Shown here piece after piece: positions 1,125 to 60,080 of a DNA stretch of 64,000 nucleotides. Position 1 is the first letter of the stretch, and each line of letters opens with the position of its first letter. Below the pieces are notes generated by a model. That model did not search any database, was not told where the DNA came from, and saw only the letters and a list, made by a program, of their open reading frames with translations. Both the position numbers and the translations under genes were made by a program. The stretch is from Macrostomum lignano (lineage: Eukaryota). The stretch spans positions 76,441 through 140,440 of the forward strand of contig NIVC01000866.1 in assembly GCA_002269645.1 (NCBI GenBank), read 5' to 3'.

Positions 1125-4100
1125 CCAGCATCACTGCCTTGGCCATATCGCCCGACTCCAAATGGATCTCAGTGGGCCGAGCCACCGGCTCCCTCGCCAA
1201 CTTTCTAACCCGAACAGCCTACTTGGAGCAAGTAGTCACTGGTGAGTATTGATGCACAAAATTCGTTTGCTTTACTCGTAGTGGATGAAATTCAGTAGTA
1301 TAAATTACAATTTATGGACCAATTATTATTTCAGGCCACAGGAACTTGGTCCATGCCGTGCAGATTTCAGCCAACTCCAAGCTGTCTGTATCCGCCTCAG
1401 CCTGCGGTGTCTGCCTCGTATACAGTCTTGATGTGGGTTGGACATTGCGAAATTTTATATTTATGACTATAGGCATAAGAGCTGTGCTAGCTAGCATCCT
1501 TTCAAGTGCTTTGAAGTGCCACTGAACTTTTTTTACGTGTGGTTTCTTACCTACTGCCTAAGAACTGAAGCTTTCTAATTGAGGCATCAGTGCAGTTTTT
1601 AGTCCAGGCAATTCTAATTAGGAGAGGCATTTGTTGCTTTTCTTCAGGAGGAGAAACTCCTGTTCGAGCTGAATCTGCGGCGGCCCTGCTTGTCCTGCTC
1701 GATTTCGTTTGACAATCGCGTCATTGTAAGACAAACTTCGTTGCTTCATTGCGTGAATTGATGAAAACTGCACGTATATTGTAGAAAATGCTACATTTTT
1801 AACCACGAAATGTTCAGAGCTCAAGAAAGTGACTGTCAAAGTCAAGTTTAGCGCTTGTGAAAGGGGTTGAAAAAGGACAGAACCCTTGCTTTTTCTACGT
1901 TTCATAGTGAGTTTTCTATGAAATAAAATTTCTTATTTCGACTGAATCAACCTGTCACTGGTTGATCACCTGGTCACTCACTGATCACCTGATCAGTCAC
2001 TCGCTGATCACCTGGTCACTCACTGATCACCTGGTCATTCGCTTATCACCTGGTCACTCACTGATCACCTGGTCAATGGCTGATCACCTGGTCACTCACT
2101 GATCACCTGGTCACTCACTGATCACCTGTTCCCTCACTGATCACCTGGTCACTCGCTGATCACCTGGTCACTGGCTGATCACCTGGTCACTCACTGATCA
2201 CCTGGTCACTGGCTGATCACCTGGTCACTCACTGATCACCTGGTCACTCGCTGATCACCTGGTCACTCACTGATCACCTGTTCCCTCACTGATCACCTGG
2301 TCACTCGCTGATCACCTGGTCACTGGCTGATCACCTGGTCACTCACTGATCACCTGGTCACTGGCTGATCACCTGGTCACTCGCTGATCACCTGGTCACT
2401 GGCTGATCACCTGGTCAATGGCTGATTACCTGGTCACTGGCTGATCACCTGGTCAATGGCTGATTACCTGGTCACTCACTGATCACCTGGTCAATGGCTG
2501 ATCACCTGGTCACTGGCTGATCACCTGGTCACTGGCTGATCACCTGGTCACTGGCTGATCATCTGGTCACTGGCTGATTACCTGGTCAATTATTTATCAC
2601 CTGTTCCCTCACTGATCACCTGTTCCCTCACTGATCACCCGATCATTCACTGATCACCTGGTCACTCGCTAATCACCTGATCTCATTAGGCTTTGATGAG
2701 AATGACTTTGAGCAAACCCATGCCAAATCCGGAACCGCAGGCCTCCGGAACATCCGCTGGTGACGTTTTCACCTGTTTGTGGCAAGCGACGGACGCGAGC
2801 GCGGCGGTAGCTCACGCCACTGTCTGCCGTCAACTGGAGCGCCGCTTGAAAAGCCGCGCCGTTTTTCACCCGGCGCCATCTTGGGCGCCAAATTCGTTGG
2901 TCTATCGAGCGCACAACAGTAAGAATGGCAAGTCACCGGTGACTGCCGTAGCATTCGCGCGTCAGAGCTGTCTCCTAGCAACCGGGGGCAGCCACGATCG
3001 ACGAGTCACGGTAGCGGATTGGTGCCGTCTTGTTCAGCTGATGTCAGTTGATGACGGGCACGGATCCTGGGTTGTGGGCTTGCGCTGGAGCCGCGACGAC
3101 CGGTGTCTGGCGTCCTGGGCTGAGCACGACTGCGTCAGGCTGTGGCGACGGCGAGCACCCGACGGTGAAGGCGGCGAGAACTCCAGCTCGGAGTTGGACT
3201 ACTCGATGGAGTCCGAAGTTGTAGCTGATTTGGAGCGAATGTGCAGCGTGTTCTGCTGCAGGTATAGGACTGCTTGATGCTGATCAGCATCCTGAGTACC
3301 TCTGAATCACTTTCTGATAACCCAGCTACACTTTAAACTACTACGAGTTATGATCTCTTGAATTGCCTACTAACCATCCAGTCGCTTTCTTTTCTATTTC
3401 TGATAAGCTGGTCGCTTCTTGATCACCTGGTTTCATCCTAAGCACCTGGCTACATCCTGAACACTTGGTTACTCCTTGAATACCTGCATGGTTACATAGG
3501 AGTACTGATCACCTCGTCACTTCCTGATGACCTGGTCTCTTTCTGGTCACCTAGTCTCTTCCTGACCACCTCCTGGTCTTTTCCTGACCACCTGGTCCTT
3601 TCCTGATCACCTGGTCCTTTCCTGATCACCTGGTCCTTTCCTGATCACCTGGTCCTTTCCTGATCACCTGGTCCTTTCCTGATCACCTGGTCCTTTCCTG
3701 ATCACCTGGTCCTTTCCTGATCACTTGGTCTCTTCCTGGACACCTGGTCTCTTCCTGACCAACTGGTCCTTTCCTGAACACCTGGTCTCTTCCTGATCAC
3801 CTGGTCCTTTCCTGATCACCTGGTCCTTTCCTGATCACCTGGTCTTTTCCTGATCACCTGGTCCTTTCCTGATCACCTAGTCCTTTCCTGATCACCTGGT
3901 CCTTTCCTGATCACTTGGTCTCTTCCTGGACACCTGGTCTCTTCCTGACCAACTGGTCCTTTCCTGAACACCTGGTCTCTTCCTGATCACCTGGTCCTTT
4001 CCTGATCACCTGGTCCTTTCCTGATCACCTGGTCCTTTCCTGATCACCTGGTCTTTTCCTGATCACCTGGTCCTTTCCTGATCACCTAGTCCTTTCCTGA

Positions 4101-9288: not shown

Positions 9289-9839
9289 CAAGGACTTATT
9301 AAGTTGAAGGACAGGAGGCAGGCCCAGTGCTGATCTTTTTTATATGTTTGCCTTTTTGTTATAGCTCCATTGATATTCCCGACACTTTTCGTTCAGAAAA
9401 ATAGGATTCTATTCATAATTTTTATTCCACTTACATTTGTAGATGTCCTGTGTCTAAGAACCATTAAAGTGGCACGGTTTTAAAATCTATTTTGTCATTC
9501 TTTGCCGAGTTTGTAACAATATTTCTAACAGAGATGATCAAATCCACTTCTAAAACCAAAAAGTCGAGCTGTGCCACGCATTTTTATGATGTTTAGATAG
9601 TAAACATAGAATCCTAATTTTCTGAACAAGAAGCTTCATGAATATCAATAGAGCTAAAAGAAAGGCACAACATATCAAAAGATGAACATTAGGTCTGCCT
9701 CCTATCAAAAGCAATAACTATTTTTGCGCCGAAAAAATGAAAACTTCCCATCTCCGTTGTGTATTTTTCGGAAAAACCGGCCTCCTAAAATTTTCCAAGA
9801 AACAATTTTTCCCGTCCTTCTAGTTGAGTGTCGTCCTTG
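9289..9839. mobile_element. Foldback MITE with CAAGGAC termini (P-superfamily-like), left arm partly deleted
   Basis: Ends CAAGGAC...GTCCTTG. Flanks CTTGCACT / CTTGCACC (7/8 TSD). The right arm (~9600-9839) closely matches 60535-60774. Confidence 0.8.
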
Positions 9840-9928
9840 CTTGCACCGCGTATGGCAAAGATAAATGAAAATTAATAAATCTCAAACCAATCAGTTCGTC
9901 CTTCTACTCAGCCAGTCTCTCTCCTTCA

Positions 9929-23661
<13,733 letters not shown>

Positions 23662-28071: not shown

Positions 28072-31000
28072 ATGCCAGAGCAGCAGCAGCAGATTAGAGA
28101 TCCCGGTGACCGCTTTACCGGTTTTCCACCTGGTCGACCGGCTGATGGCAGCCGGTGCTGGATGTTCGACCTGTTCAAGGCGGGGAGGTCGAGCCGGCGT
28201 TTTCCAATTGCTCCGGATGGTGAGTCAGACTGCATGGGTTTGACACTTGCTAATTGCTGGCAGAGTTTAGCAGTTAGGCTACTCATTATAAGCCCCTGCT
28301 GACGCTTTCAAGCTACTTACCATGACCCTAGGCTAAAACATATTCTAGCTGGTCACTATGACCTTACTCCACACACACTTAGGTACTCACTATGACCCAC
28401 TCCTGACACACTTATCTACTCACTATGACCTGCTCCTGACACACTTATTTAATCACTATGACATACTCCTGACACACTTATCTACTCACTATGACCTACT
28501 CCTGACACACATTCTTGCTACTCACTATGACCTACTACTGACACACATTCTTGCTACTCACTATGACCTACTACTGACACACATTCTTGCTACTCACTAT
28601 GACCTACTCCTGACACACATTCTTGCTACTCACTATGACCTACTCCTGACACACATTCTTGCTGCTCACTATGACCTACTCCTGAAAAACTTATCTACTC
28701 ACCATGACCTATTCCTGACACACTTATCTACTCAATATGACCTACTCCTGACACATTTATCTACTCACTATGATCCACTTCTGACACATTATTGCTACCC
28801 ACTATGACCTACTCCTGACAGATATTCTGGCTACTCACTATGACCTACTCCTGACACATTCTTGATACTCACTATGACCTACTCCTGACACACTTATCTA
28901 CTCACAATGAGCTATTCCTGACACACTTATCTACTCAATATGACCTACTCTTGACACACTTATCTACTCACTATGAACTACTCCTGACACACATTCTTGC
29001 TACAAACTATGACCTACTCCTGACAGATATTCTGGCTACTCACTATGACCTACTCCTGGCAAATAATTCTTGCTAATCACTATGACCTACTCCTGACAGA
29101 AATTCTGGCTACTCGCAATGACCTACTCCTGACAAATTGCAGTTTTTAGTCGTCAATAGCTCAATATACAATATTTTTGATTTACAACCCGCACGCGCCA
29201 GGCCAAATTCCGAACTCTGTCATACGTCAACTATTTGAGCCTTCGGAGCCGAAAGCTGCTATCAGCAGTGTGCCTGCTAAGCTAAAAAAGGTAAGTAAAC
29301 ACCTGAGCAGACAAGCCATAACTTATCATCTGATAAATATTGCGTTCGAGCTTTCAGGAAATTGCTGTAGAAAGTCAAAAAAAAATGTAAGTCGACTTTG
29401 ATCAAGAAAGAGCTTCTCTTTTAGGGTGTTGGGCTCCAGTGGAAAAACTGCTATTGTAAACTCTGGTCTTTTTAGTTCGGTTTGCTATTGACTTCTTGAG
29501 TCTCATTTCCTAGAATTTCTTAGGACATATTTAGATTTTCCGTTTGGTGATTTTGGATGGCACAAGTCTAGATGATTTTCACGCCAGACTGGATGATTCT
29601 GGTTGGTGCCAGAATAGATGATTTTGACTCCAGACTAGATGATTTTGGTTGGTGCCAGACTAAATGATTTTGACTCCAGACTAGATGATTTTGACTCCAG
29701 ACTGGATGATTTTGACTCCAGACTAGATGATTTTGACTCCAGACTAGATGATTTTGGCACCAGACTAGATGATTTTGGCACCAGACTAGATGATTTTGGC
29801 ACCAGACTAGATGATTTTGACTCCAGACTAGATGATTTTGGCTCCAGACTAGATGATTTTGGCTCCAGACTAGATGATTTTGACTCCAGACTAGATGATT
29901 TTGGCACCAGACTAGATGATTTTGACTCCAGACTAGATGATTTTGACTCCAGACTAGATGATTTTGGCTCCAGACTAGATGATTTTGACTCCAGACTAGA
30001 TGATTTTGGCACCTGACTTGATGATTTTGGTTGGTGCCAGACTAAATGATTTTGGCTCCAGACTAGATGATTTTGGCTCCAGACTAGATGATTTTGGCAC
30101 CAGAATTGATGATTTTGGCACCTGACTTGATGATTTTGGTTGGTGCCAGACTAAATGATTTTGGCTCCAGATTAGATGATTTTGGCGCCGGATCAGTTGA
30201 TTTTGGCGCCAGACTAGATAATTTCGGTAGCAGAATAGATGATTTTGGCTCCAGAAATGATAATTTTGTTGGCGCCAGACTCGTGGATTTACTGCCGGTG
30301 CTAAGCTAGGTGATCAGACCCCGGTGCTAAGCTAGGTGATCAGACCCCGGTGCTAAGCTAAGTGATCAGACCCCGGTGCTAAGCTAGGTGATCAGACCCG
30401 GCCTCATGTCGAATTTTTATCCCTCAAAACAGCCGCTGCGCCTTCGGCGCCGATTCGCGCGAGCAGAGCCGATCCCGGAGCCCGCAGCTGAGGGTGCCGC
30501 TGAGATGTCAGTGGACGAGGCGTCCTACCTCAACGTTACAACCCGCTGGGACACCTGGGCAGATGATGACAGCGGCAGCCAACAGCAGTTTGATGATGTA
30601 CCGGAGTCGAGCAGCGACACTTCGGAAGTCAGCGAAGTCAAACAGCTCGCCGAGCTACCGGAAGAGCCCAGGAGGACGGTGGAGACGCCTTCCACATCCG
30701 CCTCGGCAAGCCTTCAGCCTGCGACGAGCTTGGAGCCTCCAGCTCAGCAGCCGGCAACTTCAAAACGGAAGCGAGCAATCAATGCGGGGGCGGCCGGGGG
30801 TGTCGAGCGGCTTCCACCGCTGCCAAGCCAGCAGCAGCTCCGGCTGCTCAGGCAGAAGCGGCAGCAGCAGGTGCAGCCGCCGAAGCCACCACTGCAGCAG
30901 GAAGACCGACCGCCTCCTCCTCAACTACCGCCGTCTCCGCCGCCTCCGCTGGCAACGCAGCCTCCACCGCCGACTCCTCCGCAGCCGCCTCCGCCTCCTC

Positions 31001-33890
31001 CGCCGCCTCCAGCTCAACCGTCCAGCTCAGCCGCGCCGCCTGCACAGAAGCCGGAGGCAAAACGGACGCAAAAGCAGAATCGACAGGCAGTTGGAAGGCG
31101 AGCGCCGCCGGTGCTGAAGCCACCGCCGCCGCCACCACCGCCGCCGCCGCCACCGCCGCCTCCTCATCCGCCTGCATCACCGCCTCTTCAACGACGGGCA
31201 TCTGCTTCTTCATCGTCAGCGGAGAAGCCGCTGCCACCATCGCTGCCGTCGCCGCCGTCACGCCCGCAGCCTCCGCCGCTTCCAAAGATTCCGCAAATTC
31301 CTGTCGTGATCGTTACGGCTGACGATGTCGCCGACTTTTACGATGGCAGCGAGGATGATACAAGCCAGCCAGAGCTGGACTCGCTCCAGGGGGTGCAAGA
31401 TTTGCCCAGCTTTGCTAACCCCCTCCCCGGGGAGCCGGATATTCAATCGAATCAAGAACCGGAAGTGAAGTCGGAACCAAATTCTGAAGTGCAATCGCAA
31501 AATGAAACGAAAGGAGAAATAGAAGTGGAGCTGGAAGTGAAACAGGAAGTGGAACCGGAGGTTAAGCCGGAAGTGGAACCGGAGGTTGAGCCGGAAGTGG
31601 AACTGGAAACTGAAGACACGGAATCTGAACCGGAAGAGGAGCCGGAACTACAGGAGCTAGAAACGGTTGAGGAAATGTCTTACGATAGCAGAAAGTCTGC
31701 TACAGAGTCAGACTACCAGACCGATCTGCTCTCGGCCATCGTGTCCGAGCCGTGGTTCCGCCAGCCGGAGGTGCCGCTGCTGACGGAGCCGGTGGCCAGA
31801 GCTCTCACTGAGATGATGTCGGAGTCTACGAACAGTCTCGAGTCGCATGGGGAGATGTGTCGAAGACTGCTGGACATTAAACAGTGAGGACTTTGTTTAA
31901 CAATTGCAAATTTTAATGCCAAACATTCATTAAGTTTTCTCTTCAAATCAGACAGCTCAACCTCCGCGAAGACTTTGAGCTGCAACTTGTATCGGAGCTG
32001 ATCTCCCAGCTAGAGAGACTCATCGACGAGCTGATGAAGTTAGCCGATGAGGCCCGGAAGCTGGGACCTTCAAGAGGTGAAAGAAGCAATAACAACAGCA
32101 GCAGAAGTAGCACTGTTCGGTGCAAAGGTGACAACCTGCTGGATTTGCTCCGGCGGATGGGGCACGATTTGACGGACGAACTCAGAAAGGTAATGGGAAA
32201 GTTGAAAAGCAGCTTGGCTATCCGACCCTTTGATGTGCCGCTGCACCATCATCCCCTCCGATCCTTTGATGTGCCGCTGCACCATCATCCCCTCCGATCC
32301 TTTGATGTGCCGCTGCACCATCATTCCCTCCGACCCTTTGATTTACTGCACTGCTCTGCATCATTCCCTCTACTTTTCCTCTTTGCCTCCTCATCGTACT
32401 ATCAGTAAGCAGTTCCAGTTTCATCAGCTCAGTACCTTTGCAGCGTTGGACCGGCGCTCTTCTCTCGGCAACCCTCGCCGAGGACGCCAGCCGTCAGCAT
32501 CGCAGACCTCGACGGAGACGCCATCGCGGCCACTCCGACTCAGGCATGGGCACGGAGAGCGTCGAATCTACAGAGACTTCAGAGTCGGGCGACAGCCGAA
32601 ATCGTGAGCAGCGTAGGCTGAATGCCCTGAGTGAGGAGGAACGCCAGACTGCTGCCACCAGCTTGAGCCAGCGCGACCTGGATGCCGATGGCAAACCCAA
32701 CAGTGCTGACGAGGATGAGGAGCCCGAAGCTCTACAAGGCCTGCTGCTGCGGGACGAAGCATCGATCGACGAGACAGAGGAAGCTGACGCTGCGTCCACA
32801 GTTCGATTCATGCTGCCCCCAGAGACCTCGATTGGTTCGGAATCTGGAAACAGCGAAGAGGTAATCTGCAGAAACTTGTGCGTTAGAAAATATCTACTGA
32901 TATATAGGATTGTGCAATCCGAAAGTGACGCCATTCGATCATTGGCTGCTTGCTTCTAAAAATAGAAACTGACGCTATTCAGTGATTATCTGCGTGTTTC
33001 TAAAAATAGAAACTGACGCCATTCAGTGATTATATGCGTGTTTCTAAAAATAGAAACTGACGCCAATTGCTTACGTAATTTGCAGAAGCACTGGCTCCCT
33101 CCCGTGCCAACTCCGCCACCGATGCCACGACCAAATCAAAGGAGGCCGGTATTTTTCGAGGCCAAAGAGGAGACGGTGTTCGAGTAAGACATTTCTCACT
33201 GAACCTCTCTCTGGCAACAGAATAACTTGAAACTTATTTTCAGTTTTATGCGTATGCGGTTAAACTTTCAGTCAGATGGGCGACTTTCGACTGAAGCGAC
33301 TTGTGCAGAACTTGCCGCCGATTGTGCGCCTGGACCTCGAGTCCATCGCTGAGCGCTCGCGCCAGTCGGCCAGCAGCTATCGGTGCCCTCGGCTAGTTGA
33401 TCAATCGTCCCGTTGGTCCAATCGTTCCTCCGGATAGTGAGCTGACTTTCCAGTTTGGTTCGAATCGCACTACTCAGCTCAGTAGTCAGCAGAGAACTCA
33501 TATTATTTTTTCAGCTACAGCGATCGAAGTCAACAGCCCGACGCTACCAGCTACTCGGCCACCTGGCAACCAGCTCAAGTCTTCGAGTCGGAGCCGGACG
33601 ACTCAACGACGTCTGCGCCGTTCCGCCTGCCAGCCCTGGATCGGCAGGTGAGACAGACAGAACGGTCTCAGGCTCGGGTGCGATTTTCTTCTTGCAACCA
33701 CGATGAAGCCAGCTCGAGCGGTGATGCAGACAGCAGCATCCCGATGCGGCCATCAGAGCTGTGGGATGCGCACTGCAGGATGGAGAGCCTGGCCAAGCAC
33801 GGCATGGACGCCGCCGGTATTCGGATTGGACGCCACCTGGCCAGGGACCGCCTGCTGTTCTCGCTACTGCTGCCATCGCTGAGGGAATAA
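28072..33890 (+). CDS. Pro-rich/Glu-rich, largely disordered protein of unknown function, ~993 aa, 8 exons
   Basis: Exons 28072-28219, 29202-29290, 30433-31883, 31952-32189, 32444-32860, 33086-33183, 33272-33436 and 33515-33890. All are AG/GT bounded and the phases chain (1,0,2,0,0,2,2); total 2982 nt = 994 codons. Contains polyproline tracts, EVEP repeats and a helical/coiled-coil-like segment (LNLREDFELQLVSELISQLERLIDELMKLADEARK). AATAAA at 34300-34305. Confidence 0.8.
28355..29130. repeat. 36-bp minisatellite (CACTATGACCTACTCCTGACACACATTCTTGCTACT)n
   Basis: Read directly; in intron 1 of the orphan gene. Confidence 0.95.
29560..30290. repeat. 21-bp minisatellite (GATGATTTTGACTCCAGACTA)n
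   Basis: Read directly; in intron 2 of the orphan gene. Confidence 0.95.
30295..30400. repeat. 26-bp tandem repeat (CCGGTGCTAAGCTAGGTGATCAGACC) x ~4
   Basis: Read directly; just upstream of the 30433 acceptor. Confidence 0.9.
32222..32345. repeat. 36-bp tandem repeat x ~3 (TCCGATCCTTTGATGTGCCGCTGCACCATCATCCCC)
   Basis: Read directly; in intron 32190-32443. Confidence 0.85.
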
Positions 33891-36522: not shown

Positions 36523-43664
<7,142 letters not shown>

Positions 43665-43747
43665 GGCTGCCGAGCTTGTGGTTGGTTCGAGTTTGACTTC
43701 GAGTGACCTGCGCGAATTCCGGTTGGCAATGTCGCATTGTAGGAATT

Positions 43748-46700
43748 GAGAGTGACTGCTTTAGAGTGACTGATTGAGAGTGACTGATTGAGAGTGACTG
43801 ATTGAGAGTGACTGACTGAGAGTGACTGATTGAGAGTGACTGATTGAGAGTGACTGATTGAGAGTGACTGACTGAGAGTGACTGATTGAGAGTGACTGAT
43901 TGAGAGTGACTGATTGAGAGTGACTGATTCAGAGTTACTGATTCAGAGTGACTGATTCAGAGTTACTGATTCAGAGTGACTGATTCAGAGTGACTGACTG
44001 AGAGTGACTGATTGAGAGTGATTGATTGAGAGTGGGCTTATTTAGAGTGACTGATTGAGAGTGACTGATTAAGAGTGACTGATTGAGAGTGACTGATTGA
44101 GAGTGACTGATTGAGAGTGACTGATTGAGAGTGACTGATTGAGAGTGACTGATTGAGAGTGACTGATTGAGAGTGACTGATTGAGAGTGACTGATTGAGA
44201 GTGACTGGTTGAGAGTGACTGATTGAGAGTAACTGATTGAGAGTGACTGATTGAGAGTGACTGATTGAGAGTGACTGATTGAGGGTGACTGATTGAGAGT
44301 GACTGATTGAGAGTGACTGATTGAGAGTGACTGATTGAGAGTGACTGGTTGAGAGTGACTGATTGAGAGTGACTGATTGAGAGTGACTGATTGAGGGTGA
44401 CTGATTGAGAGTGACTGATTGAGAGTGACTGATTGAGAGTGACTGATTGAGAGTGACTGATTGAGAGTGACTGATTGAGAGTGACTGATTGAGAGTGACT
44501 GATTGAGAGTGACTGATTGAGAGTGACTGATTGAGAGTGACTGATTGAGAGTGACTGATTGAGAGTGACTGATTGAGAGTGACTGATTGAGAGTGACTGG
44601 TTGAGAGTGACTGATTGAGAGTAACTGGTTGAGAGTGACTGATTGAGAGTGACTGATTGAGAGTGACTGATTGAGAGTGACTGATTGAGAGTGACTGATT
44701 GAGAGTGACTGATTGAGAGTGACTGGTTGAGAGTGACTGATTGAGAGTGACTGGTTGAGAGTGACTGATTGAGAGTAACTGATTGAGAGTGACTGATTGA
44801 GAGTGACTGATTGAGAGTGACTGATTGAGAGTGACTGATTGAGAGTGACTGATTGAGAGTGACTGATTGAGAGTGACTGGTTGAGAGTGACTGATTGAGA
44901 GTGACTGATTGAGAGTGACTGATTGAGGGTGACTGATTGAGAGTGACTGATTGAGAGTGACTGATTGAGAGTGACTGATTGAGAGTGACTGATTGAGAGT
45001 GACTGATTGAGAGTGACTGATTGAGAGTGACTGATTGAGAGTGACTGATTGAGAGTGACTGATTGAGAGTGACTGATTGAGAGTGACTGATTGAGAGTGA
45101 CTGATTGAGAGTGACTGATTGAGAGTGACTGATTGAGAGTGACTGGTTGAGAGTGACTGATTGAGAGTAACTGGTTGAGAGTGACTGATTGAGAGTGACT
45201 GATTGAGAGTGACTGATTGAGAGTGACTGATTGAGAGTGACTGATTGAGAGTGACTGATTGAGAGTGACTGATTGAGAGTGACTGATTGAGAGTGACTGA
45301 TTGAGCAGTGACTGATTGAGAGTGACTGATTGAGAGTGACTGGTTGAGAGTGACTGATTGAGAGTGACTGGTTGAGAGTGACTGATTGAGAGTAACTGAT
45401 TGAGAGTGACTGATTGAGAGTGACTGATTGAGAGTGACTGATTGAGAGTGACTGATTGAGAGTGACTGATTGAGAGTGACTGGTTGAGAGTGACTGATTG
45501 AGAGTGACTGATTGAGAGTGACTGATTGAGGGTGACTGATTGAGAGTGACTGATTGAGAGTGACTGATTGAGAGTGACTGATTGAGAGTGACTGATTGAG
45601 AGTGACTGATTGAGAGTAACTGATTGAGAGTGACTGATTGAGAGTGACTGATTGAGAGTGACTGATTGAGAGTGACTGATTGAGAGTGACTGATTGAGAG
45701 TGACTGATTGAGAGTGACTGATTGAGAGTGACTGATTGAGAGTGACTGGTTGAGAGTGACTGATTGAGAGTGACTGATTGAGAGTGACTGATTGAGGGTG
45801 ACTGATTGAGAGTGACTGATTGAGAGTGACTGATTGAGAGTGACTGATTGAGAGTGACTGATTGAGAGTGACTGATTGAGAGTGACTGATTGAGAGTGAC
45901 TGATTGAGAGTGACTGATTGAGAGTGACTGATTGAGAGTGACTGATTGAGAGTGACTGATTGAGAGTGACTGATTGAGAGTGACTGATTGAGAGTGACTG
46001 ATTGAGAGTGACTGGTTGAGAGTGACTGATTGAGAGTAACTGGTTGAGAGTGACTGATTGAGAGTGACTGATTGAGAGTGACTGATTGAGAGTGACTGAT
46101 TGAGAGTGACTGATTGAGAGTGACTGATTGAGAGTGACTGATTGAGAGTGACTGATTGAGAGTGACTGATTGAGCAGTGACTGATTGAGAGTGACTGATT
46201 GAGAGTGACTGGTTGAGAGTGACTGATTGAGAGTGACTGGTTGAGAGTGACTGATTGAGAGTAACTGATTGAGAGTGACTGATTGAGAGTGACTGATTGA
46301 GAGTGACTGATTGAGAGTGACTGATTGAGAGTGACTGATTGAGAGTGACTGATTGAGAGTGACTGATTGAGAGTGACTGATTGAGAGTGACTGATTGAGG
46401 TGACTGATTGAGAGTGACTGATTGAGAGTGACTGATTGAGAGTGACTGATTGAGAGTGACTGATTGAGAGTGACTGATTGAGAGTGACTGATTGAGAGTG
46501 ACTGATTGAGAGTGACTGATTGAGAGTGACTGATTGAGAGTGACTGATTGAGAGTGACTGATTGAGAGTGACTGATTGAGAGTGACTGATTGAGAGTGAC
46601 TGATTGAGAGTGACTGGTTGAGAGTGACTGATTGAGAGTAACTGATTGAGAGTGACTGATTGAGAGTGACTGATTGAGAGTGACTGATTGAGAGTGACTG

Positions 46701-46790
46701 ATTGAGAGTGACTGATTGAGAGTGACTGATTGAGAGTGACTGATTGAGAGTGACTGATTGAGAGTGACTGATTGAGCAGTGACTGATTGA
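43748..46790. repeat. 3-kb 14-bp satellite (GAGAGTGACTGATT)n
   Basis: Read directly; explains the 952-aa and 913-aa ORFs. Confidence 0.98.
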
Positions 46791-47449
46791 GCAGTCACTA
46801 ACAGTAACAAAATGAAATCCGTAGATCAATAGATTATTATTTATAGCTCAAAAGACGCGTAATTCCTAACGCAGTTAATAAATTTGGCTTCCTGTCAGCC
46901 TTCCGTATCTGCAAGCAGCGCACACAGACTGTATCGTCACTGCTTAGCACACCCACGCAAGACCATCTCCTGTTTCAGTTCTGCTTTGTTCACCGAGCGC
47001 GGCTTCCTTTCGGGAAGATCTTTCACTGCGGAAGGAGCCAAGCACACACACACACACACACACACATCTTCCATCACACACATCTTCCATCACACACACA
47101 TCTTCACTCATTAATCTCCTGTGTCTCTCTGTCTCCTAGACTCCGTCAGTTAGTGTTAAATTCATTCAAAGTAGCAACCTCATGGTGCCTCGCAGTTCAT
47201 TATCTCACATAGTCGACCTCTAGTGCGCCCTCCTGATCGCCAACTCCTTTTTTGGGAGAGCGAATGGGGGCTTGAGATTCTCGCGTACCGGATGGTTGCT
47301 ATGGATATAGGGACAGGTGGCCCTGCCTGTTCTACCTCTGCCTGCGAATCGTTGTCTATCCCACCAAATCTCTCCCTTCTCTCTCCTTCTCCCTGTCTCC
47401 CTCCCTTCTCGACCTGCATTTCCTAATCTTCCATCTTTCAGTCATTTTC

Positions 47450-52860: not shown

Positions 52861-53371
52861 TTTCCTTGCTATCTCCTCTCATTCGTTTTTGTATCTTATC
52901 TTTATGAAATCCTTCCATACTTGTCAATATTTATTTACAGAAGTTTTGAAACATACCGTACCTTGCTTCCAGCAATATATAATTATTGTCTCCTGCTGTC
53001 ATAAAATTTCATCATCACGCAAACACGTGAGGCCCTATCTGACGCAAAGAACACTGTGCACCCCAGAATTAAATACTTTTGAGCCTCAATACTACAATAG
53101 AAAGGAAAAGAAACTGCTCAATTTGCATTAACTACGAGTACTAGACCAAAGTACGCAGTGTTAATCGCACCCCAATCGTACCCCATACGTATTAATTGTA
53201 TCGTTGTTTGTCAGTGCCCTTGGCACTTTCGTCTCGCTGAGTTTAACACTCACTTGCCCAGCGAGGAATAAAAAGCCGGTTCAATCCGCTTCTTAATCAC
53301 ACTCGGGGGCATTTCGCATGCAGGCGCCTCCCGTGTCGTAGGTCTGCTCAGAAAGCGTGCTCAGAACAGGC

Positions 53372-53378
53372 TATAAAT
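53372..53378 (+). promoter_or_regulatory. TATA box of cationic peptide gene 1
   Basis: TATAAAT 95 nt upstream of the ATG at 53473; Inr-like TCAG about 25 nt downstream. Confidence 0.7.
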
Positions 53379-53472
53379 GGGCCCCAGCTTCACTTCCATT
53401 ATCAGCTGACTGGGAGGTCTGAATCGCCGCTGTTCTCGTTGAATTTCCGCAGCATCAGCAGCATCAATCAGC

Positions 53473-53718
53473 ATGAAGTGGCAGCTGGCCGCTCTTCTGC
53501 TCGCCTGCGTCGCCGTGGCCGTCATGGCGTCGCCGTCGGCCGAGGCCGAGGACTCGGACCTGGCCGAGCTCGCCCAGCTGCAGGAGGCCATGGAGAGCGA
53601 TGAGGTCGAGCACCTGCAGGCTAAAGGCCGCTACAGGCGCTTCAAGCGCAAGCTGAAGCGCGCCTACAAGCGCTATCTGAAGAGGCACGGATACCGGAGG
53701 CACGTGATTTATGGCTGA
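53473..53718 (+). CDS. Secreted cationic peptide precursor 1 (81 aa; putative antimicrobial peptide)
   Basis: Intronless ORF MKWQLAALLLACVAVAVMA|SPSAEAEDSDLAELAQLQEAMESDEVEHLQAK|GRYRRFKRKLKRAYKRYLKRHGYRRHVIYG*. Hydrophobic signal peptide, propiece with 10 D/E, and a 30-aa tail with 9 R + 5 K and no acidic residue. GC3-rich codons; TATA box present. Confidence 0.9.
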   Translation: MKWQLAALLLACVAVAVMASPSAEAEDSDLAELAQLQEAMESDEVEHLQAKGRYRRFKRKLKRAYKRYLKRHGYRRHVIYG

Positions 53719-54534
53719 TTGTGGCCGCCACTGGACTGTCCGCAACGGAACTGATTGTACTGAGTAATACTATATGCTCTCCACAGTATGAAGTACTTTG
53801 TAGAATTATCGATACAAGTATTGCATTTGCAAAATTATCAATACCGAAAAGAGCATGTTTCACCATCGCATGAGCTTGTCGTGTCAATGCAGCTGATTTA
53901 TACAAAAAGAATGGTAATACACGAGCGTACACTTACTTTGCTATTCCTACTCTTATTTTAAGTACAGGTAACTCGTACGGGCTACTCTCAGCAGTTCTTG
54001 TTTTTATTTATTGAATTTGAAGATGGCTTGCACACCGAAAAGGCGAATTCCGTGTCCTAGATTGGATGATCTGGCATGCTAAATCAGAGATTGTGCAAAG
54101 ACTCGACTGTTCTCTTTGATCAAGAGTTCGAATTGATTTTTAGTATGTTTGTATTCAATCGTTCAGAGTCCCTCTGAAATATGATAAACACTTTTACTAT
54201 AGCTTTTGCAGCCCATTAGGGCCTACGTGCGATAAATTTAATTTAATGTAAGACACGGTTGGTAAAGTAATGGAGCTTTTGTCTATGGTAGCAAGGCTGA
54301 CACAGTGGCATTTAATTTGGTCAGCTATTGGTTTGCTGTTAGCATCACATCAAGCTCTGCAATGTTGCTTGAATAAAATTAATATCGTAGGCGTAGGAAC
54401 GTTTCAAAAAGTGGGGGGCCAGGTTCAGTGGCGGATTTAGGGGGGGGGGGGAGGGCGCACGCCCCCCATCGAGTTGGATTTTTTATATGGGAAATGCACA
54501 TTATCATGTACAGATTATTTTCAGAATCGGTGTT

Positions 54535-55830
54535 GTCAGCACTCATTTTAGCGCCGCAGCCACTCATTTTAGCGCCACAAGCATTCATTTTAGCGCCGCA
54601 GGCACTCATTTTAGCGCCACAAGCATTCATTTTAGCGCCACAAGCATTCATTTTAGCGCCGCAGGCACTCATTTTAGCGCCACAGACACTCATTTTAGCG
54701 CCACAAGCATTCATTTTAGCACCGCAGGCACTCATTTTAGCGCTGCAGGCACTCAGTTTAGCACCGCAGCCACTCATTTTAGCGCGGCAGGCACTCATTT
54801 TAGCGCCGCAGCCACTCATTTTAGCGCTGCAGGCACTCAGTTTAGCACCGCAGCCACTCATTTTTGCGCCGCAGGCACTCATTTTAGCGCTGCTGGCAGT
54901 CATTAGCGCCGCAGGCACTCATTTTAGCGCTGCTGGCAGTCATTAGCGCCGCAGGCACTCATTTTAGCGCCGCAGGCACTCATTTTAGCGCGGCAGGCAC
55001 TCAGTTTAGCGCCGCAGCCACTCATTTTAGCGCGGCAGGCACTCATTTTAGCGCCGCAGGCACTCATTTTAGCGCCGCAGGCACTCATTTTAGCGCTGCT
55101 GGCAGTCATTAGCGCCGCAGGCACTCATTTTAGCGCTGCTGGCAGTCATTAGCGCCGCAGGCACTCATTTTAGCGCCGCAGGCACTCATTTTAGCGCTGC
55201 AGGCACTCAGTTTAGCGCCGCAGCCACTCATTTTAGCGCGGCAGGCACTCATTTTAGCGCCGCAGGCACTCATTTTAGCGCTGCTGGCAGTCATTTTAGC
55301 GCTGCAGGCACTCAGTTTAGCGCCGCAGCCACTCATTTTAGCGCGGCAGGCACTCATTTTAGCGCCGCAGGCACTCATTTTAGCGCCGCAGGCACTCATT
55401 TTAGCGCTGCAGGCACTCAGTTTAGCGCCGCAGCCACTCATTTTAGCGCGGCAGGCACTCATTTTAGCGCCGCAGGCACTCATTTTAGCGCCGCAGGCAC
55501 TCATTTTAGCGCTGCAGGCACTCAGTTTAGCGCCGCAGCCACTCATTTTAGCGCGGCAGGCACTCATTTTAGCGCCGCAGGCACTCATTTTAGCGCCGCA
55601 GGCACTCATTTTAGCGCTGCAGGCACTCAGTTTAGCGCCGCAGCCACTCATTTTAGCGCGGCAGGCACTCATTTTAGCGCCGCAGGCACTCATTTTAGCG
55701 CTGCTGGCAGTCATTAGCGCTGCAGGCAGTCATTTTAGCGCCGCAGCCACTCATTTTAGCGCGGCAGTCACTCAGTTTAGCGCTGCTGGCAGTCATTAGC
55801 GCCTCAGGCAGTCATTAGCGCTGCAGGCGA
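54535..55830. repeat. 21-bp minisatellite (CACTCATTTTAGCGCCGCAGG)n
   Basis: Read directly; explains the CGAKMSA/ILAPQAL ORFs. Confidence 0.95.
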
Positions 55831-57296: not shown

Positions 57297-57596
57297 TTAG
57301 CCATAGAAGTGGTAGCGCCTGCGGAAGAAGCGCCTGCGGATGCGGAAGTAGCGCCTGCGGAAGTTGCGCCTGCGGAAGTAGCGCCTGCGGAAGTAGCGAC
57401 GCCTGCCGAACCGAATCCTAAACTTCTCTTCCGGATCCGCGTCCTCGTCGGATTCGGCCAGATCGGGCTCGGCCATGTCGGCCAGGGCGGAGGCCACCTT
57501 TTCAAAGTCTTCGTCGTCTTCTTTGTGCTCAGCCGGGCTGGCGTAGACCGCCAGCGCCACGCACAGGAGGAGACCGAGAGCGAACTGCCACTTCAT
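57297..57596 (-). CDS. Secreted Arg-rich peptide precursor 2 (99 aa; putative antimicrobial peptide)
   Basis: Intronless ORF from ATG 57596: MKWQFALGLLLCVALAVYA|SPAEHKEDDEDFEKVASALADMAEPDLAESDEDADPEEK|FRIRFGRRRYFRRRYFRRRNFRRRYFRIRRRFFRRRYHFYG*. Propiece has 17 D/E; the tail has 21 Arg in 41 aa. The first 21 residues are 15/21 identical to precursor 1. Confidence 0.92.
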   Translation of the reverse strand: MKWQFALGLLLCVALAVYASPAEHKEDDEDFEKVASALADMAEPDLAESDEDADPEEKFRIRFGRRRYFRRRYFRRRNFRRRYFRIRRRFFRRRYHFYG

Positions 57597-57682: not shown

Positions 57683-57689
57683 ATTTATA
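57683..57689 (-). promoter_or_regulatory. TATA box of cationic peptide gene 2
   Basis: TATAAAT on the minus strand, 87 nt upstream of the ATG; same CTATAAAT context as gene 1. Confidence 0.7.
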
Positions 57690-60080
57690 GACCCGCAAAC
57701 TGGGGCGGGGGCACGTTTTTGCTTACCTGCAAAACAGAAGCCCCAAAAAACGTGCTCTCAAGACTCGATAGGGGGTTGAAATTTGAATGCTTTTGCCTCA
57801 TGGTCCAAATTGCATTCAAAGAAAGAACGAAAGATGCATGCAGTAGCTGCCATTTTAATTTCAGCAACCACATATCTGATATTAATTCTCTCACGGCCCC
57901 TTCTCAACTCAATGCTACCTAGCCTTGAGGCAGCAGTAATTAAAAGCGGCTCTTCAGTGTCAGACTCACAATAGGTGGCCTCAAGAACAGCATAAGCAAG
58001 TCTTGAGCAGTTGAGCTTGAGAGTTGAAGCTGTTATTGTCTGGAAAACTACCGAACTCTACCTACGAGTCTTGTGAGTTCGCTCACACACTTGCAGACTT
58101 GCGTCGCATGGAAGCTTTTTCGGTCCCAGCATATTTTGGCCCATAAATTTTCTGTCAGGTTGACAGAGATCCCGGGACTTTAAAGCTGATTTGTGTCTAT
58201 CTTCCAAGGGAATTTGTTTATCGTCAATTCAGCGAACCCAAAGTTTTGCATGCTGGTATCGGCACGGGCTGTTCTGCCAGGCGTCCTGCACACCGCAGCG
58301 CTGTTGCTGGGGCTATTGATGTCAGAGATGCATTTGCGACAAAGCACTGGCATTATTGGCATATTTAGCATGAGCAGTACCCTCAGGAGTTTGCAGCCTA
58401 AACTTATGCAGCTTTGAAAAGTCAGAGATTCCTTCATGCTGCCACACCTTCACAGACTAAATATCTTGACTACAAAAGACTGTATCATCATCAGATTCGT
58501 ATTACATTCAGTGGTGTAGCAGTTTGAACAACCCAATGAATTCGAATGACATTTCGAAACACTTTTTATGCACACTCGGCAGTTCAAAATTACCTTCAAT
58601 GGTTCACCAAAAATTTAGTGATGGTTCACCAGCAGTTTAGCAATGGCTCACCCACAATTTGGCTACGGTTCACCAACGGTTTAGAAACGGTTTATCAGAA
58701 GTTTAGCAATGGCTCACCAGCTATGGTTTACCAGCACTGTTTCTCACAATCCCTGAGCAGATGGCCACAAATCTCCGAGCAGTTCTACAGTAATCCCATG
58801 GTAGTTTTTCGCCGACCATGCTGAGACCCAAAAAGGTCTAAAAAGGGATATTTCTCAATAAATCGAAACAATTTTAAATGTTTTAAAGATCCTTGCATCA
58901 TTATCTATGTATTTATTGTAAATGTCAGATTAGACTGCTCCCCAGATTTCAAATATTAAGAACTCTGTGAATCCGAGCTATGTTTTCCGTTTGGTTATCT
59001 CATCGTTTCGTCTGGGAACCTGTATCGAACTCAAAGGCAGTTTTATTACGTAACATCTACTCGCTGCAAAGAGATAGATGCAAAATAGGGCTCCGAACAC
59101 TCTCCAATGCTTCATCGCCGAATGATACGATACCACTGAGCTCAAACTCAAAGTACTAAACCCCTCCGACCACTTCCGTGAGGCGATTTCTTATTTAGGT
59201 AAACAATGGGAGGCATTGATGGAGTGGAATCAAATCATTTACATTTCACTTCCAGCAAAAAACAAACAAGATCAAAGTATCATCAAAGTAGTCTGCATCA
59301 GTGAGTTATCCGTGGATTCGCTCCGTGTAAGCGGAGTGAAATAAAGTCAAGTAGTCAGAAGTCTGAACTTTACGAGATTGCGACACGAAAGCCAAAAAAC
59401 AACGTTGCAGGCCGAAAAGCCAGCTTATACTGAAACTTTATCGATATTTTATTATCGATCAGCTGACTCACCCAAACCCCACCCCGCGCTTGCAAAGTAC
59501 ATTCAGCGAGAGTGAGAGACATCAAAACAACCCAACCCAGCACCTGCCACCGGCGCTCACGCATAAAGTAACCACAGCAGTGATGCACGGTCCTCTGGGG
59601 GTTGTTTCACAGTCGTGGGTGCTCTTCACTATTACTTAGGCGTAACTTCTACGAGTTTATTTTGATGCCAACCGAGACTGAGCTTTCTGGGTGGAGATGC
59701 AGTATGAAGTAGGATTGGCCATAGACAAACCTTAATGTGGAAGAAGGTATACATGTATTGAAGTTGCTCTGGCATGTGCCAAGTTCACTTTTCTGATCTT
59801 TCTGTGTTTACTGCCATACCGTCTTTACCGTGAATTGGCTGAAAATATATCGAATATCCATTCAATTCGACTTGAAGCAACTCAAGCAACTCCTTATGTG
59901 CTCTAAAGCTGGGAGCGACATCGGGGCTTTTACTACAGACTAATTTTCTTTCGTGAAATATTTCTAGAGAATGAAAGTTTATTGCTATTTAACTAAAAAC
60001 TTGAGCCTTACCTTACCTTTATAAGTAATCTAACCATATTTGCGACCGACGAATATGCAATAAGTAGTACGAGATACAAG

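Follow-up and report, generated by a model that had tools for sequence, protein, structure and literature searches.

The preprodermaseptins of frogs and the conopeptides are built from a conserved signal peptide, an acidic spacer, a basic cleavage site and a hypervariable cationic tail that is often amidated via a terminal Gly. In Hydra, the arminins and periculins combine a signal peptide with an anionic part and a cationic C-terminal part that is released by proteolysis, and the antimicrobial peptide (AMP) families of this genus comprise many tandem-clustered paralogues, which are confined to the one genus, diverge fast and are in some cases normally silent (PMC10945409). For flatworms, the AMP repertoire has been stated to be undescribed (PMC10414684). 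Here we analyze a stretch of 64,000 nucleotides (nt) from the free-living marine flatworm Macrostomum lignano (contig NIVC01000866.1, positions 76,441–140,440; assembly GCA_002269645.1, which is Mlig_3_7; PMC5730564), hereafter the window, and a small gene within it, gene A. Judged from the sequences, gene A is intact and belongs to a tandemly expanded family of small, predicted secreted prepropeptides that is restricted to Macrostomum.

Gene A is an intact open reading frame (ORF) of 81 amino acids (aa) that needs no intron. The translation divides into a signal peptide (MKWQLAALLLACVAVAVMA), an acidic pro-region (SPSAEAEDSDLAELAQLQEAMESDEVEHLQAK) and a cationic tail (GRYRRFKRKLKRAYKRYLKRHGYRRHVIYG). 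The signal peptide has a hydrophobic core of 2.97 on the Kyte-Doolittle scale and would be cut after Ala19 when the −3/−1 rule is applied by eye. The pro-region contains no Cys and is modeled by AlphaFold2 with helices at residues 23–41 and 44–50. The tail (53626..53715, +) starts at codon 52 and runs for 30 residues, with nine Arg, five Lys, two His, a net charge of +14 and a C-terminal Gly, and it is followed by TGA at 53716–53718. An earlier sequence-only reading had described the tail as a cationic peptide amide; its coordinates and residue counts are reproduced exactly by translation, and the precursor layout supports a secreted prepropeptide with a polycationic, Gly-ended tail. If amidated, the 29-residue peptide has a computed monoisotopic mass of 3922.3 Da.

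The GC content of gene A is 65%, and 88% at third codon positions (GC3), compared with 42–43% in the flanks. This contrast, together with the upstream TATA box and the significant family relatives described below, clearly indicates a real gene rather than a chance ORF. Three antisense ORFs that overlap gene A (53361..53591, 53464..53745 and 53642..53932, all −) were rejected as by-products of the GC-rich coding frame. An Rfam scan of both strands of the window between 50 and 60 kb revealed no RNA family, and a scan of the window for bacterial promoters and terminators was set aside because the source is eukaryotic. Gene A has one exact copy in the assembly. Its exact sequence and that of its neighboring paralogue, gene B, were not found in the NCBI and UniRef protein collections, where a further paralogue, gene D, is annotated.

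Gene B is the only match in the window when the gene A precursor is used as a tblastn query. It carries the same signal peptide, a pro-region with a net charge of −14 and a tail (FRIRFGRRRYFRRRYFRRRNFRRRYFRIRRRFFRRRYHFYG) of 41 aa that has a charge of +21, contains no Lys and ends in FYG. A single-sequence homologue search with the 81-aa gene A precursor, based on a word index, gave no match. A profile built from A and B retrieved P0001 (E = 2.7e-16), P0002 (3.4e-07), P0003 (5.9e-05) and P0004 (8.1e-05) from 1.84 billion representative proteins, and the resulting family profile added P0009–P0015. The family profile found 11 proteins, and profile matches reached E = 2.7e-16 to 1e-13. All the named family matches are M. 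lignano 'hypothetical proteins', while P0004 is a Logan contig of SRA run SRR31628392. When 12 members were combined into a profile for a third search, no further members emerged, owing to saturation of the candidate list by Arg-rich words.

Two candidate matches were discarded. The metagenomic protein P0005 shares only a (RRRYW)n repeat with the family and has neither the signal peptide nor the pro-region, which marks it as a compositional match. A 'Lock_Gag1-like' Pfam match on P0010 (27.1 bits, cut-off 27) covers a 17-residue acidic repeat and was judged spurious. Pfam searches with A, B and eight relatives gave nothing above threshold, the best match for gene A being an irrelevant one at E = 0.022; the PDB sequence search returned no relative, only coiled-coil noise at E > 1. 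The profile searches detected no relatives outside Macrostomum.

An alignment of 12 family members reveals that M1, Q4, L10, L33 and K51 are invariant and that the family signal, MKWQ(L/F)ALGLLLC, is nearly so. The Lys at the boundary between the pro-region and the tail (K51 in gene A) is conserved in 12 of 12 members and is the sole such residue outside the signal peptides and pro-regions. Gene A has the whole family layout of conserved signal peptide, acidic pro-region, boundary Lys and cationic tail. The net charge ranges from −6 to −15 in the pro-regions and from +3 to +42 in the tails, and 8 of 11 tails end in Gly. No mutual alignment of the tails of these 12 members is possible. The tail of gene A (GRYRRFKRK...) is of a helical amphipathic type, that of P0001 (WFSRWFRITYRRRGGERRYLRSYFRL-Gly) is rich in Arg and aromatic residues, that of P0006 (WRRRRRFRWRKAIRVAGKVAKAVL) is rich in Trp and Arg, that of P0003 (WRIKSACKIFRRLLHLARKCYAKK-Gly) contains a Cys pair and that of P0004 (FLRVRLPRVRMPRVRLPRVRLPRLRVRFRWSKK) is a Pro/Arg repeat. 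P0010 and P0012–P0014 end in short (8–10 residues) alternating tails, FVRVRVRL-Gly and variants, and the tails of B, D and E are polymers of Arg, Tyr and Phe. The family thus appears to be one conserved secretion and processing cassette on which several cationic designs have been explored.

At least five family copies lie within ~25 kb of the contig, A on the forward strand and B, C, D and E on the reverse strand, of which A and B are inside the window. P0009 was located on this contig as well, 4.3 kb past the window end, and copies C, D and E were found by tblastn and ORF listing at the P0009 locus. Gene D (Mlig025063g1/Mlig008283g1) encodes 105 aa in the genomic sequence and is situated 15 kb from gene A. 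Gene E ends in a 77-residue near-pure Arg/Tyr co-polymer (42 Arg and 28 Tyr, +42) with a period-4 RRYY repeat and a terminal YYG, in itself an unusual secreted sequence. Fragment C, between B and D, is probably a decaying copy. The other subfamilies are solitary; both P0001 and P0012 exist in three identical copies, each copy on a contig of its own, which is expected in a neopolyploid genome. The P0001 copies (NIVC01001462.1, NIVC01000621.1 and NIVC01000739.1; loci L008–L010) are flanked by PARP-domain genes, with conserved synteny between the contigs that likewise agrees with neopolyploidy.

The paralogues also share an upstream module (Table 1), of which gene A has kept the TATA box, while its upstream box has one mismatch. 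An (A)AACGTG-type box is located 8–35 nt before the TATA box in A, B, D, E, P0004 and P0012. In the paralogues, a (C/T)ATAAAT element lies ~90–125 nt before the ATG, and an inverted CACGTTT copy is often present further upstream of AAACGTG; this inverted copy is missing in gene A. In the whole window of 64 kb, the strict module pattern has a single match, which lies upstream of B and compares with 0.01 matches expected by chance; in the fetched loci it occurs upstream of family genes only. The ACGTG core hints at a bHLH- or bZIP-type regulator, such as a CREB3/CrebA-like secretory factor, which is speculation.

Table 1. Features of gene A, its relatives and the remainder of the window. Positions are those of the window unless a fetched locus (L003–L008) is named.
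Feature	Position	Strand	Sequence or remark
Degenerate AAACGTG box of gene A	53352..53359	+	AAAGCGTG, one mismatch
TATA box of gene A	53372..53378	+	TATAAAT, 101 nt upstream of ATG
Gene A ORF	53473..53718	+	81 aa, single exon
Gene A signal peptide (predicted)	53473..53529	+	Aligns with near-invariant family signal MKWQLALGLLLC
Gene A acidic pro-region	53530..53625	+	32 aa, net −9, ends at family-invariant Lys51
Predicted mature peptide of gene A	53626..53712	+	GRYRRFKRKLKRAYKRYLKRHGYRRHVIY, 29 aa, net +14, isoelectric point 11.7
Amphipathic segment of gene A	53632..53685	+	YRRFKRKLKRAYKRYLKR, mature residues 3–20, tetrads RFKR-KLKR-AYKR-YLKR
Terminal Gly codon, a possible donor of the amide, with TGA stop	53713..53718	+	
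Paralogue B	57297..57596	−	99 aa, convergent with gene A, 3.6 kb apart
Promoter module of B	57683..57718	−	AAACGTG box and TATAAAT
Fragment C	L003 13731–13922; contig ~141.1–141.3 kb, just outside the window	−	…LADLAEPD…LQEKFRIRFRFRKHRYFRRRSQF, no signal peptide upstream
Gene E	L003 719–1165; NIVC01000866.1, ~13.4–13.9 kb past the window end	−	Signal peptide, acidic pro-region and tail
Promoter module in fetched loci	L003 9873–9908; L004 398–423; L005–L007 ~9893–9917; L008 ~9830–9905		
WD40-repeat exon	2693–3277	+	Pfam WD40, E = 1.6e-6; likely host gene
705-aa ORF	9929–12046	−	68% GC, poly-Gln tracts, no Pfam domain; likely host coding exon
Probable transposon remnant	13284–13895	+	Weak Pfam Tnp_P_element helix-turn-helix match, E = 2.6e-4, just under threshold
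Tandem array	18377–21932		12-mer x298
499-aa Pro-rich ORF	30388–31887	+	Likely host coding exon
GA-rich tract	41575–43338		1.8 kb
Tandem array	43745–46791		14-mer x217
Tandem array	54539–55828		21-mer x62, between genes A and B

The alignment bears directly on how the precursor would be processed. The cut after LQAK, which the sequence-only reading had offered as a guess, falls at the family-invariant Lys51 and so has good comparative support, which is not proof. At the boundary, the family has a single Lys or KK and not KR or RR, and the residue that follows is usually aromatic or Leu (F, W, Y or L), whereas in gene A it is Gly. The enzyme would be a Lys-directed protease (K or KK) rather than a KR/RR convertase. 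In most members Lys is found only at the boundary and Arg only within the tail, the exceptions being A (five Lys), P0003 and P0006; a Lys-directed enzyme would explain this avoidance of Lys in most tails. The Arg-only tails likewise hint at a Lys-specific protease and selection against internal Lys. C-terminal amidation of the gene A peptide is predicted from the terminal Gly alone.

Within the tail, Y3, F6, L10, A13, Y14, Y17 and L18 stand where the sequence-only reading had placed them, at the spacing from which it proposed a hydrophobic helical face. That reading had named a helical wheel and a hydrophobic-moment calculation as the check, and both reveal an amphipathic helical register in residues 3–20. 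On the wheel (100 degrees per residue, residues 3–20), the seven residues occupy one 140-degree arc, from 280 to 60 degrees, in which K7 is the sole intruder, and ten Lys or Arg residues fill the remaining 220 degrees. Over windows of 18 residues, the helical moment reaches 0.62 (Fauchere-Pliska scale) or 0.80 (Eisenberg scale), which is higher than in composition-preserving shuffles (p = 0.004–0.008) that were likewise scored by their best window. The angular spectrum peaks at 90–100 degrees, which reflects the tetrad register RFKR-KLKR-AYKR-YLKR. This periodicity is a protein-level pattern, four repeats of x-hydrophobic-K-R; no TRF repeat was found in the tail, and the tail is thus not a recent DNA tandem repeat, in contrast to that of paralogue B, which is encoded by a DNA tandem repeat with an in-frame unit of 15 nt, (YFRRR)n.

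The significance for gene A is modest after multiple testing over the 11 family tails, in which E (p = 0.001) and P0003 (p = 0.017) pass as well. The tails of P0004, P0012 and P0013 show beta-type alternation, and those of B and D are neither helical nor beta. The contrast with the neighboring paralogue, for which the sequence-only reading had proposed a different mechanism, is real at the level of sequence pattern: B shows no helical amphipathicity (p = 0.5). With the family alignment as input, AlphaFold2 places a helix at tail residues 3–20 of gene A (precursor residues 54–71) with a predicted local distance difference test (pLDDT) score of ~81 and a break at His21-Gly22. We discarded this model as evidence for a helix because the non-amphipathic paralogue B receives a longer and more confident one.

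Conservation of the signal peptide is strong and extends to synonymous sites, as a comparison of B, D and P0001 reveals. In these genes, the nonsynonymous divergence (dN) of the signal peptide is 0 and its synonymous divergence (dS) ~0.15, while the pro-region has a dN of 0.30–0.39 and a dS of 0.51–0.66, with a dN/dS of 0.46–0.76. The tails of the three are not alignable.

The GenBank gene models of M. lignano were derived from RNA-seq, and a filter applied at submission removed transcripts that overlap repeats (PMC5730564). Since their models are based on RNA-seq, at least D, P0001, P0006 and P0012 are transcribed. The absence of A and B from the annotation is weak evidence of silence because of the repeat-overlap filter. 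A literature search with sequence strings and 12 gene identifiers gave no main-text match, and no family identifier or sequence was present in the supplementary files of three papers, which report the genome, an in situ screen of seminal fluid and, in 2026, differential expression.

We consider the chances about even that gene A and its family serve host defence as antimicrobial-type peptides. This reading, the best of those considered, draws on the precursor architecture, on the clustering and on two paralogue groups having been flagged in silico as AMPs before. By analogy, the conserved cassette, the anionic pro-piece, the hypervariable tail, the tandem clusters and the lineage restriction together fit a gene-encoded host-defence family. 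The flag comes from Irvine et al., 2023 (PMC10414684, S5 file), in which groups 116 (Mlig008283g1/Mlig025063g1, the gene D type) and 142 (Mlig024774g1/g2) were classified as AMP-like by 73–100% of predictors. Both groups were dropped there, being found in a single genome each, and were never synthesized; antibacterial activity was shown in the same study for a comparably Arg-rich nematode peptide, nAMP-LP-298 (PMC10414684).

In this scenario, the signal peptide would direct the precursor into the secretory pathway, where the anionic pro-region (−9) could partly offset the +14 tail during transport and storage. An endoprotease would cleave after Lys51 and the terminal Gly would be converted to a C-terminal amide, which would free a 29-residue peptide of ~3.92 kDa. 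The peptide would reach an epithelial, mucus or gut surface, where it may bind anionic microbial envelopes electrostatically, and residues 3–20 may then fold as an amphipathic helix that breaks at His21-Gly22 and has a Tyr/Phe/Leu face of only 140 degrees. Given the very high charge and the near-zero mean hydrophobicity, surface-carpet disruption, or translocation followed by polyanion binding, would be expected rather than a discrete lytic pore.

Several observations weigh against a defence function. Linear amphipathic alpha-helical AMPs typically contain 40–60% hydrophobic residues and have a positive mean hydrophobicity. The mean hydrophobicity of the gene A peptide is −0.02, compared with 0.20–0.38 in the yardstick peptides magainin 2, cecropin A, LL-37 and BMAP-27. 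The 29-mer is 48% Lys or Arg and its hydrophobic face is mostly Tyr; hydrophobic residues amount to 38% with Tyr and to 21% (6 of 29) without it. Gene A has the charge and periodicity of the linear cationic amphipathic helical class but not its substantial hydrophobicity. M. lignano is a marine animal, and the salt of sea water screens purely electrostatic binding. The Arg/Tyr polymers, such as the +42 tail of gene E, are atypical of AMPs and suggest a polyanion-binding or materials role, and the tail of P0015 is not cationic. The upstream box of gene A is degenerate, and no other signal peptide of the family diverges as much as that of gene A; the RNA-based protein set in GenBank contains neither A nor B, and no expression, tissue, processing or activity data were found for any family member. 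Finally, the gene A tail contains six dibasic sites (KR four times, RR twice, with KRK present) and five Lys, and the processing site is itself a Lys. Internal cleavage, which could yield fragments no longer than the pentapeptide HVIY-Gly, is thus a genuine risk; complete dibasic processing would leave GRY, F, L, AY, YL, HGY and HVIY-Gly only.

A bolder version of the defence reading, which we put forward as a doubtful proposition, is that the family is the first gene-encoded host-defence system of free-living flatworms. In this version, the Arg/Tyr-polymer branch (B, D and E) would act in a non-classical way, by condensing or phase-separating with polyanions such as microbial envelopes, extracellular DNA or the animal's own sulphated mucus, and A would be a recently derived, Lys-enriched, helix-forming and membrane-active offshoot. 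If this is true, the 25-kb cluster is a natural series that leads from a coacervating polycation to an amphipathic helical AMP.

The polymer tails lead to the first alternative, namely that the family encodes polyanion-condensing or structural secretions, in which Arg/Tyr polycations pack or cross-link anionic secretions (for example, sulphated glycosaminoglycans in rhabdite mucus, adhesive, eggshell or cement) by complex coacervation and Arg-Tyr cation-pi contacts. The acidic pro-region would keep the polycations soluble until release, and gene A would again be a Lys-enriched offshoot. B, D and E are indeed near-pure co-polymers of Arg with Tyr or Phe, reaching 77 residues and +42, of which B and D have no helical or beta amphipathicity, and Tyr provides 5 of the 29 residues in the gene A peptide. 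A polycation partner is plausible in rhabdites, which in planarians are built on sulphated glycosaminoglycans (PMC5450325). However, the members with an FVRVRVRL-amide (8–10 residues), a Pro/Arg repeat or a Cys pair are too short or too AMP-like for such a role, a hypervariable tail on a conserved cassette is typical of defence peptides and toxins and not of structural proteins, and nothing was found that connects the family with transcripts of rhabdites or adhesive glands. We regard a structural role as rather unlikely.

A second alternative concerns gene A rather than the family: the family itself would be functional, with gene A being a silent or decaying copy, or one that is expressed only under unsampled conditions, so that the predicted peptide would never be made. 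Gene A is missing from the RNA-seq-derived annotation in which D, 15 kb away, is present; its signal peptide departs furthest from the family pattern, its AAACGTG box is mismatched and the inverted copy is missing; the neighboring copy C has already lost its signal peptide; and there is one exact copy of gene A compared with three each of P0001 and P0012. On the other hand, the ORF is intact with 88% GC3 amid 42% GC and has kept the terminal Gly, the TATA box and the family-wide Lys. Despite a perfect promoter module, B is unannotated too, which, together with the repeat filter, weakens the argument from annotation, and Hydra AMP paralogues are often silent in homeostasis without being pseudogenes (PMC10945409). 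We consider this explanation of gene A unlikely.

Less probable, in our view, is a reproductive function, in which the products would be peptides of the prostate, of seminal fluid or of another genital gland that evolve fast through sexual selection or conflict rather than through pathogens. Rapid divergence, lineage restriction, small secreted products and the lack of known domains also characterize the proteins that M. lignano is presumed to place in its seminal fluid (PMC5977470), and the pro-region dN/dS (0.46–0.76) and the unalignable tails agree with such a history. Neither family sequences nor their signal-peptide string were found in the supplementary files of the in situ screen of seminal fluid, which is a weak negative because these list transcript identifiers and BLAST annotations rather than sequences. 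To our knowledge, extreme cationic charge combined with amidation is not a feature of M. lignano seminal fluid proteins, and we count this against a reproductive role.

A neuropeptide or hormone precursor, in which dibasic cuts and amidation yield HVIY-amide from A and FVRVRVRL-amide from others, is very improbable. In its favor, neuropeptide precursors likewise run from a signal peptide through an acidic spacer and a basic cleavage site to a C-terminal Gly, gene A has KR (four), RR (two) and KRK sites, and antibacterial action is reported for some cnidarian neuropeptides (PMC5614986). Against it, the paralogue tails are hypervariable and not alignable where receptor-coupled peptides are conserved, full dibasic cutting of gene A would leave pieces of one to three residues and HVIY-Gly, the family site is a single Lys or KK rather than KR/RR, and Arg/Tyr tails of 40–77 residues are unlike neuropeptides.

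If the family serves defence, it would be a second independent case, beside Hydra, of taxonomically restricted and tandemly expanding defence peptides in a simple aquatic animal. If it is reproductive or structural, the conserved cassette with its hypervariable tail is still a clear instance of rapid peptide innovation. The sequences of the Arg/Tyr polymers are unusual in themselves. The gene A peptide is one, possibly silent, member, and its individual importance is modest. M. lignano is a flatworm model with transgenesis, RNA interference and a transparent body (PMC5730564, PMC7053086), and these established tools, combined with the compact and recognizable promoter module, render the family directly testable in the animal itself.

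The remainder of the window has a very high tandem-repeat load, with 41 TRF rows at a score of at least 200, in keeping with the M. lignano genome. Long arrays, examples of which are listed in Table 1, produce most of the long ORFs that are listed mechanically in the window. The ORF that carries the weak P-element match is probably a THAP9/P-element-like transposon remnant.

Among the known peptide systems, the class to which the sequence-only reading had assigned the gene A peptide, the 'cecropin/cathelicidin type', stands as a loose physical analogy in the helical register; homology, a cathelin domain and a hydrophobic C-terminal helix are all absent, and Lys and Arg make up 48% of the peptide. 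Gene A does have an N-terminal amphipathic segment and a His-Gly break, whereas its C-terminal YRRHVIY is cationic and not a hydrophobic helix. No Pfam, PDB or homologue match to cecropins was found, and given this lack of homology and of a hydrophobic C-terminal helix the peptide is not a cecropin. Nor is it a cathelicidin, because it lacks the cathelin domain: cathelicidins carry a cathelin-like pro-domain of ~100 aa with four conserved Cys, whereas the gene A pro-region is 32 aa long, acidic and Cys-free. The N-terminal helix of the bovine cathelicidin BMAP-27 resembles gene A in a charge of ~+10 over 18 residues, a narrow aromatic/Leu face and the start GR(F/Y)(K/R)RF, and its moment of 0.72 is comparable with the 0.62 of gene A. 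Only four of the six N-terminal residues are alike and BLASTP gives E = 61, which makes this a likeness of style only; BMAP-27 also has a hydrophobic C-terminal tail and a mean hydrophobicity of 0.38, compared with −0.02 for gene A, which has no cathelin pro-domain.

The closest parallels lie in the architecture of whole families. The flatworm family resembles the Hydra arminins and periculins in its signal peptide, anionic part and cationic C-terminal part predicted to be released by proteolysis, and the Hydra AMP families in tandem-clustered paralogues, confinement to one genus, fast divergence and possible silence of some members. There is no sequence homology between them; most Hydra families carry Cys patterns, whereas the flatworm tails are mostly Cys-free, dominated by Arg and often internally repetitive. 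Activity and expression have been demonstrated for the Hydra families, while the flatworm family is known here from sequence. With the frog preprodermaseptins and conopeptides, the family shares the layout of a conserved signal and a hypervariable tail; it differs from the frog type in having no homology to it, a single Lys or KK at the cleavage site instead of KR, ORFs that appear to be single-exon and a different taxon. Within flatworms, the fAMP-LP groups 116 and 142 are true paralogues of gene A (PMC10414684, S5 file). The earlier study treated them as unrelated, cut them at ProP-predicted Arg sites rather than at the family Lys and screened a proteome that does not contain genes A and B (PMC10414684). 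The common cassette, the promoter and the clustering were not recognized earlier, and gene A is unannotated. The family is new and of a known kind, previously glimpsed as two unconnected groups in a supplement.

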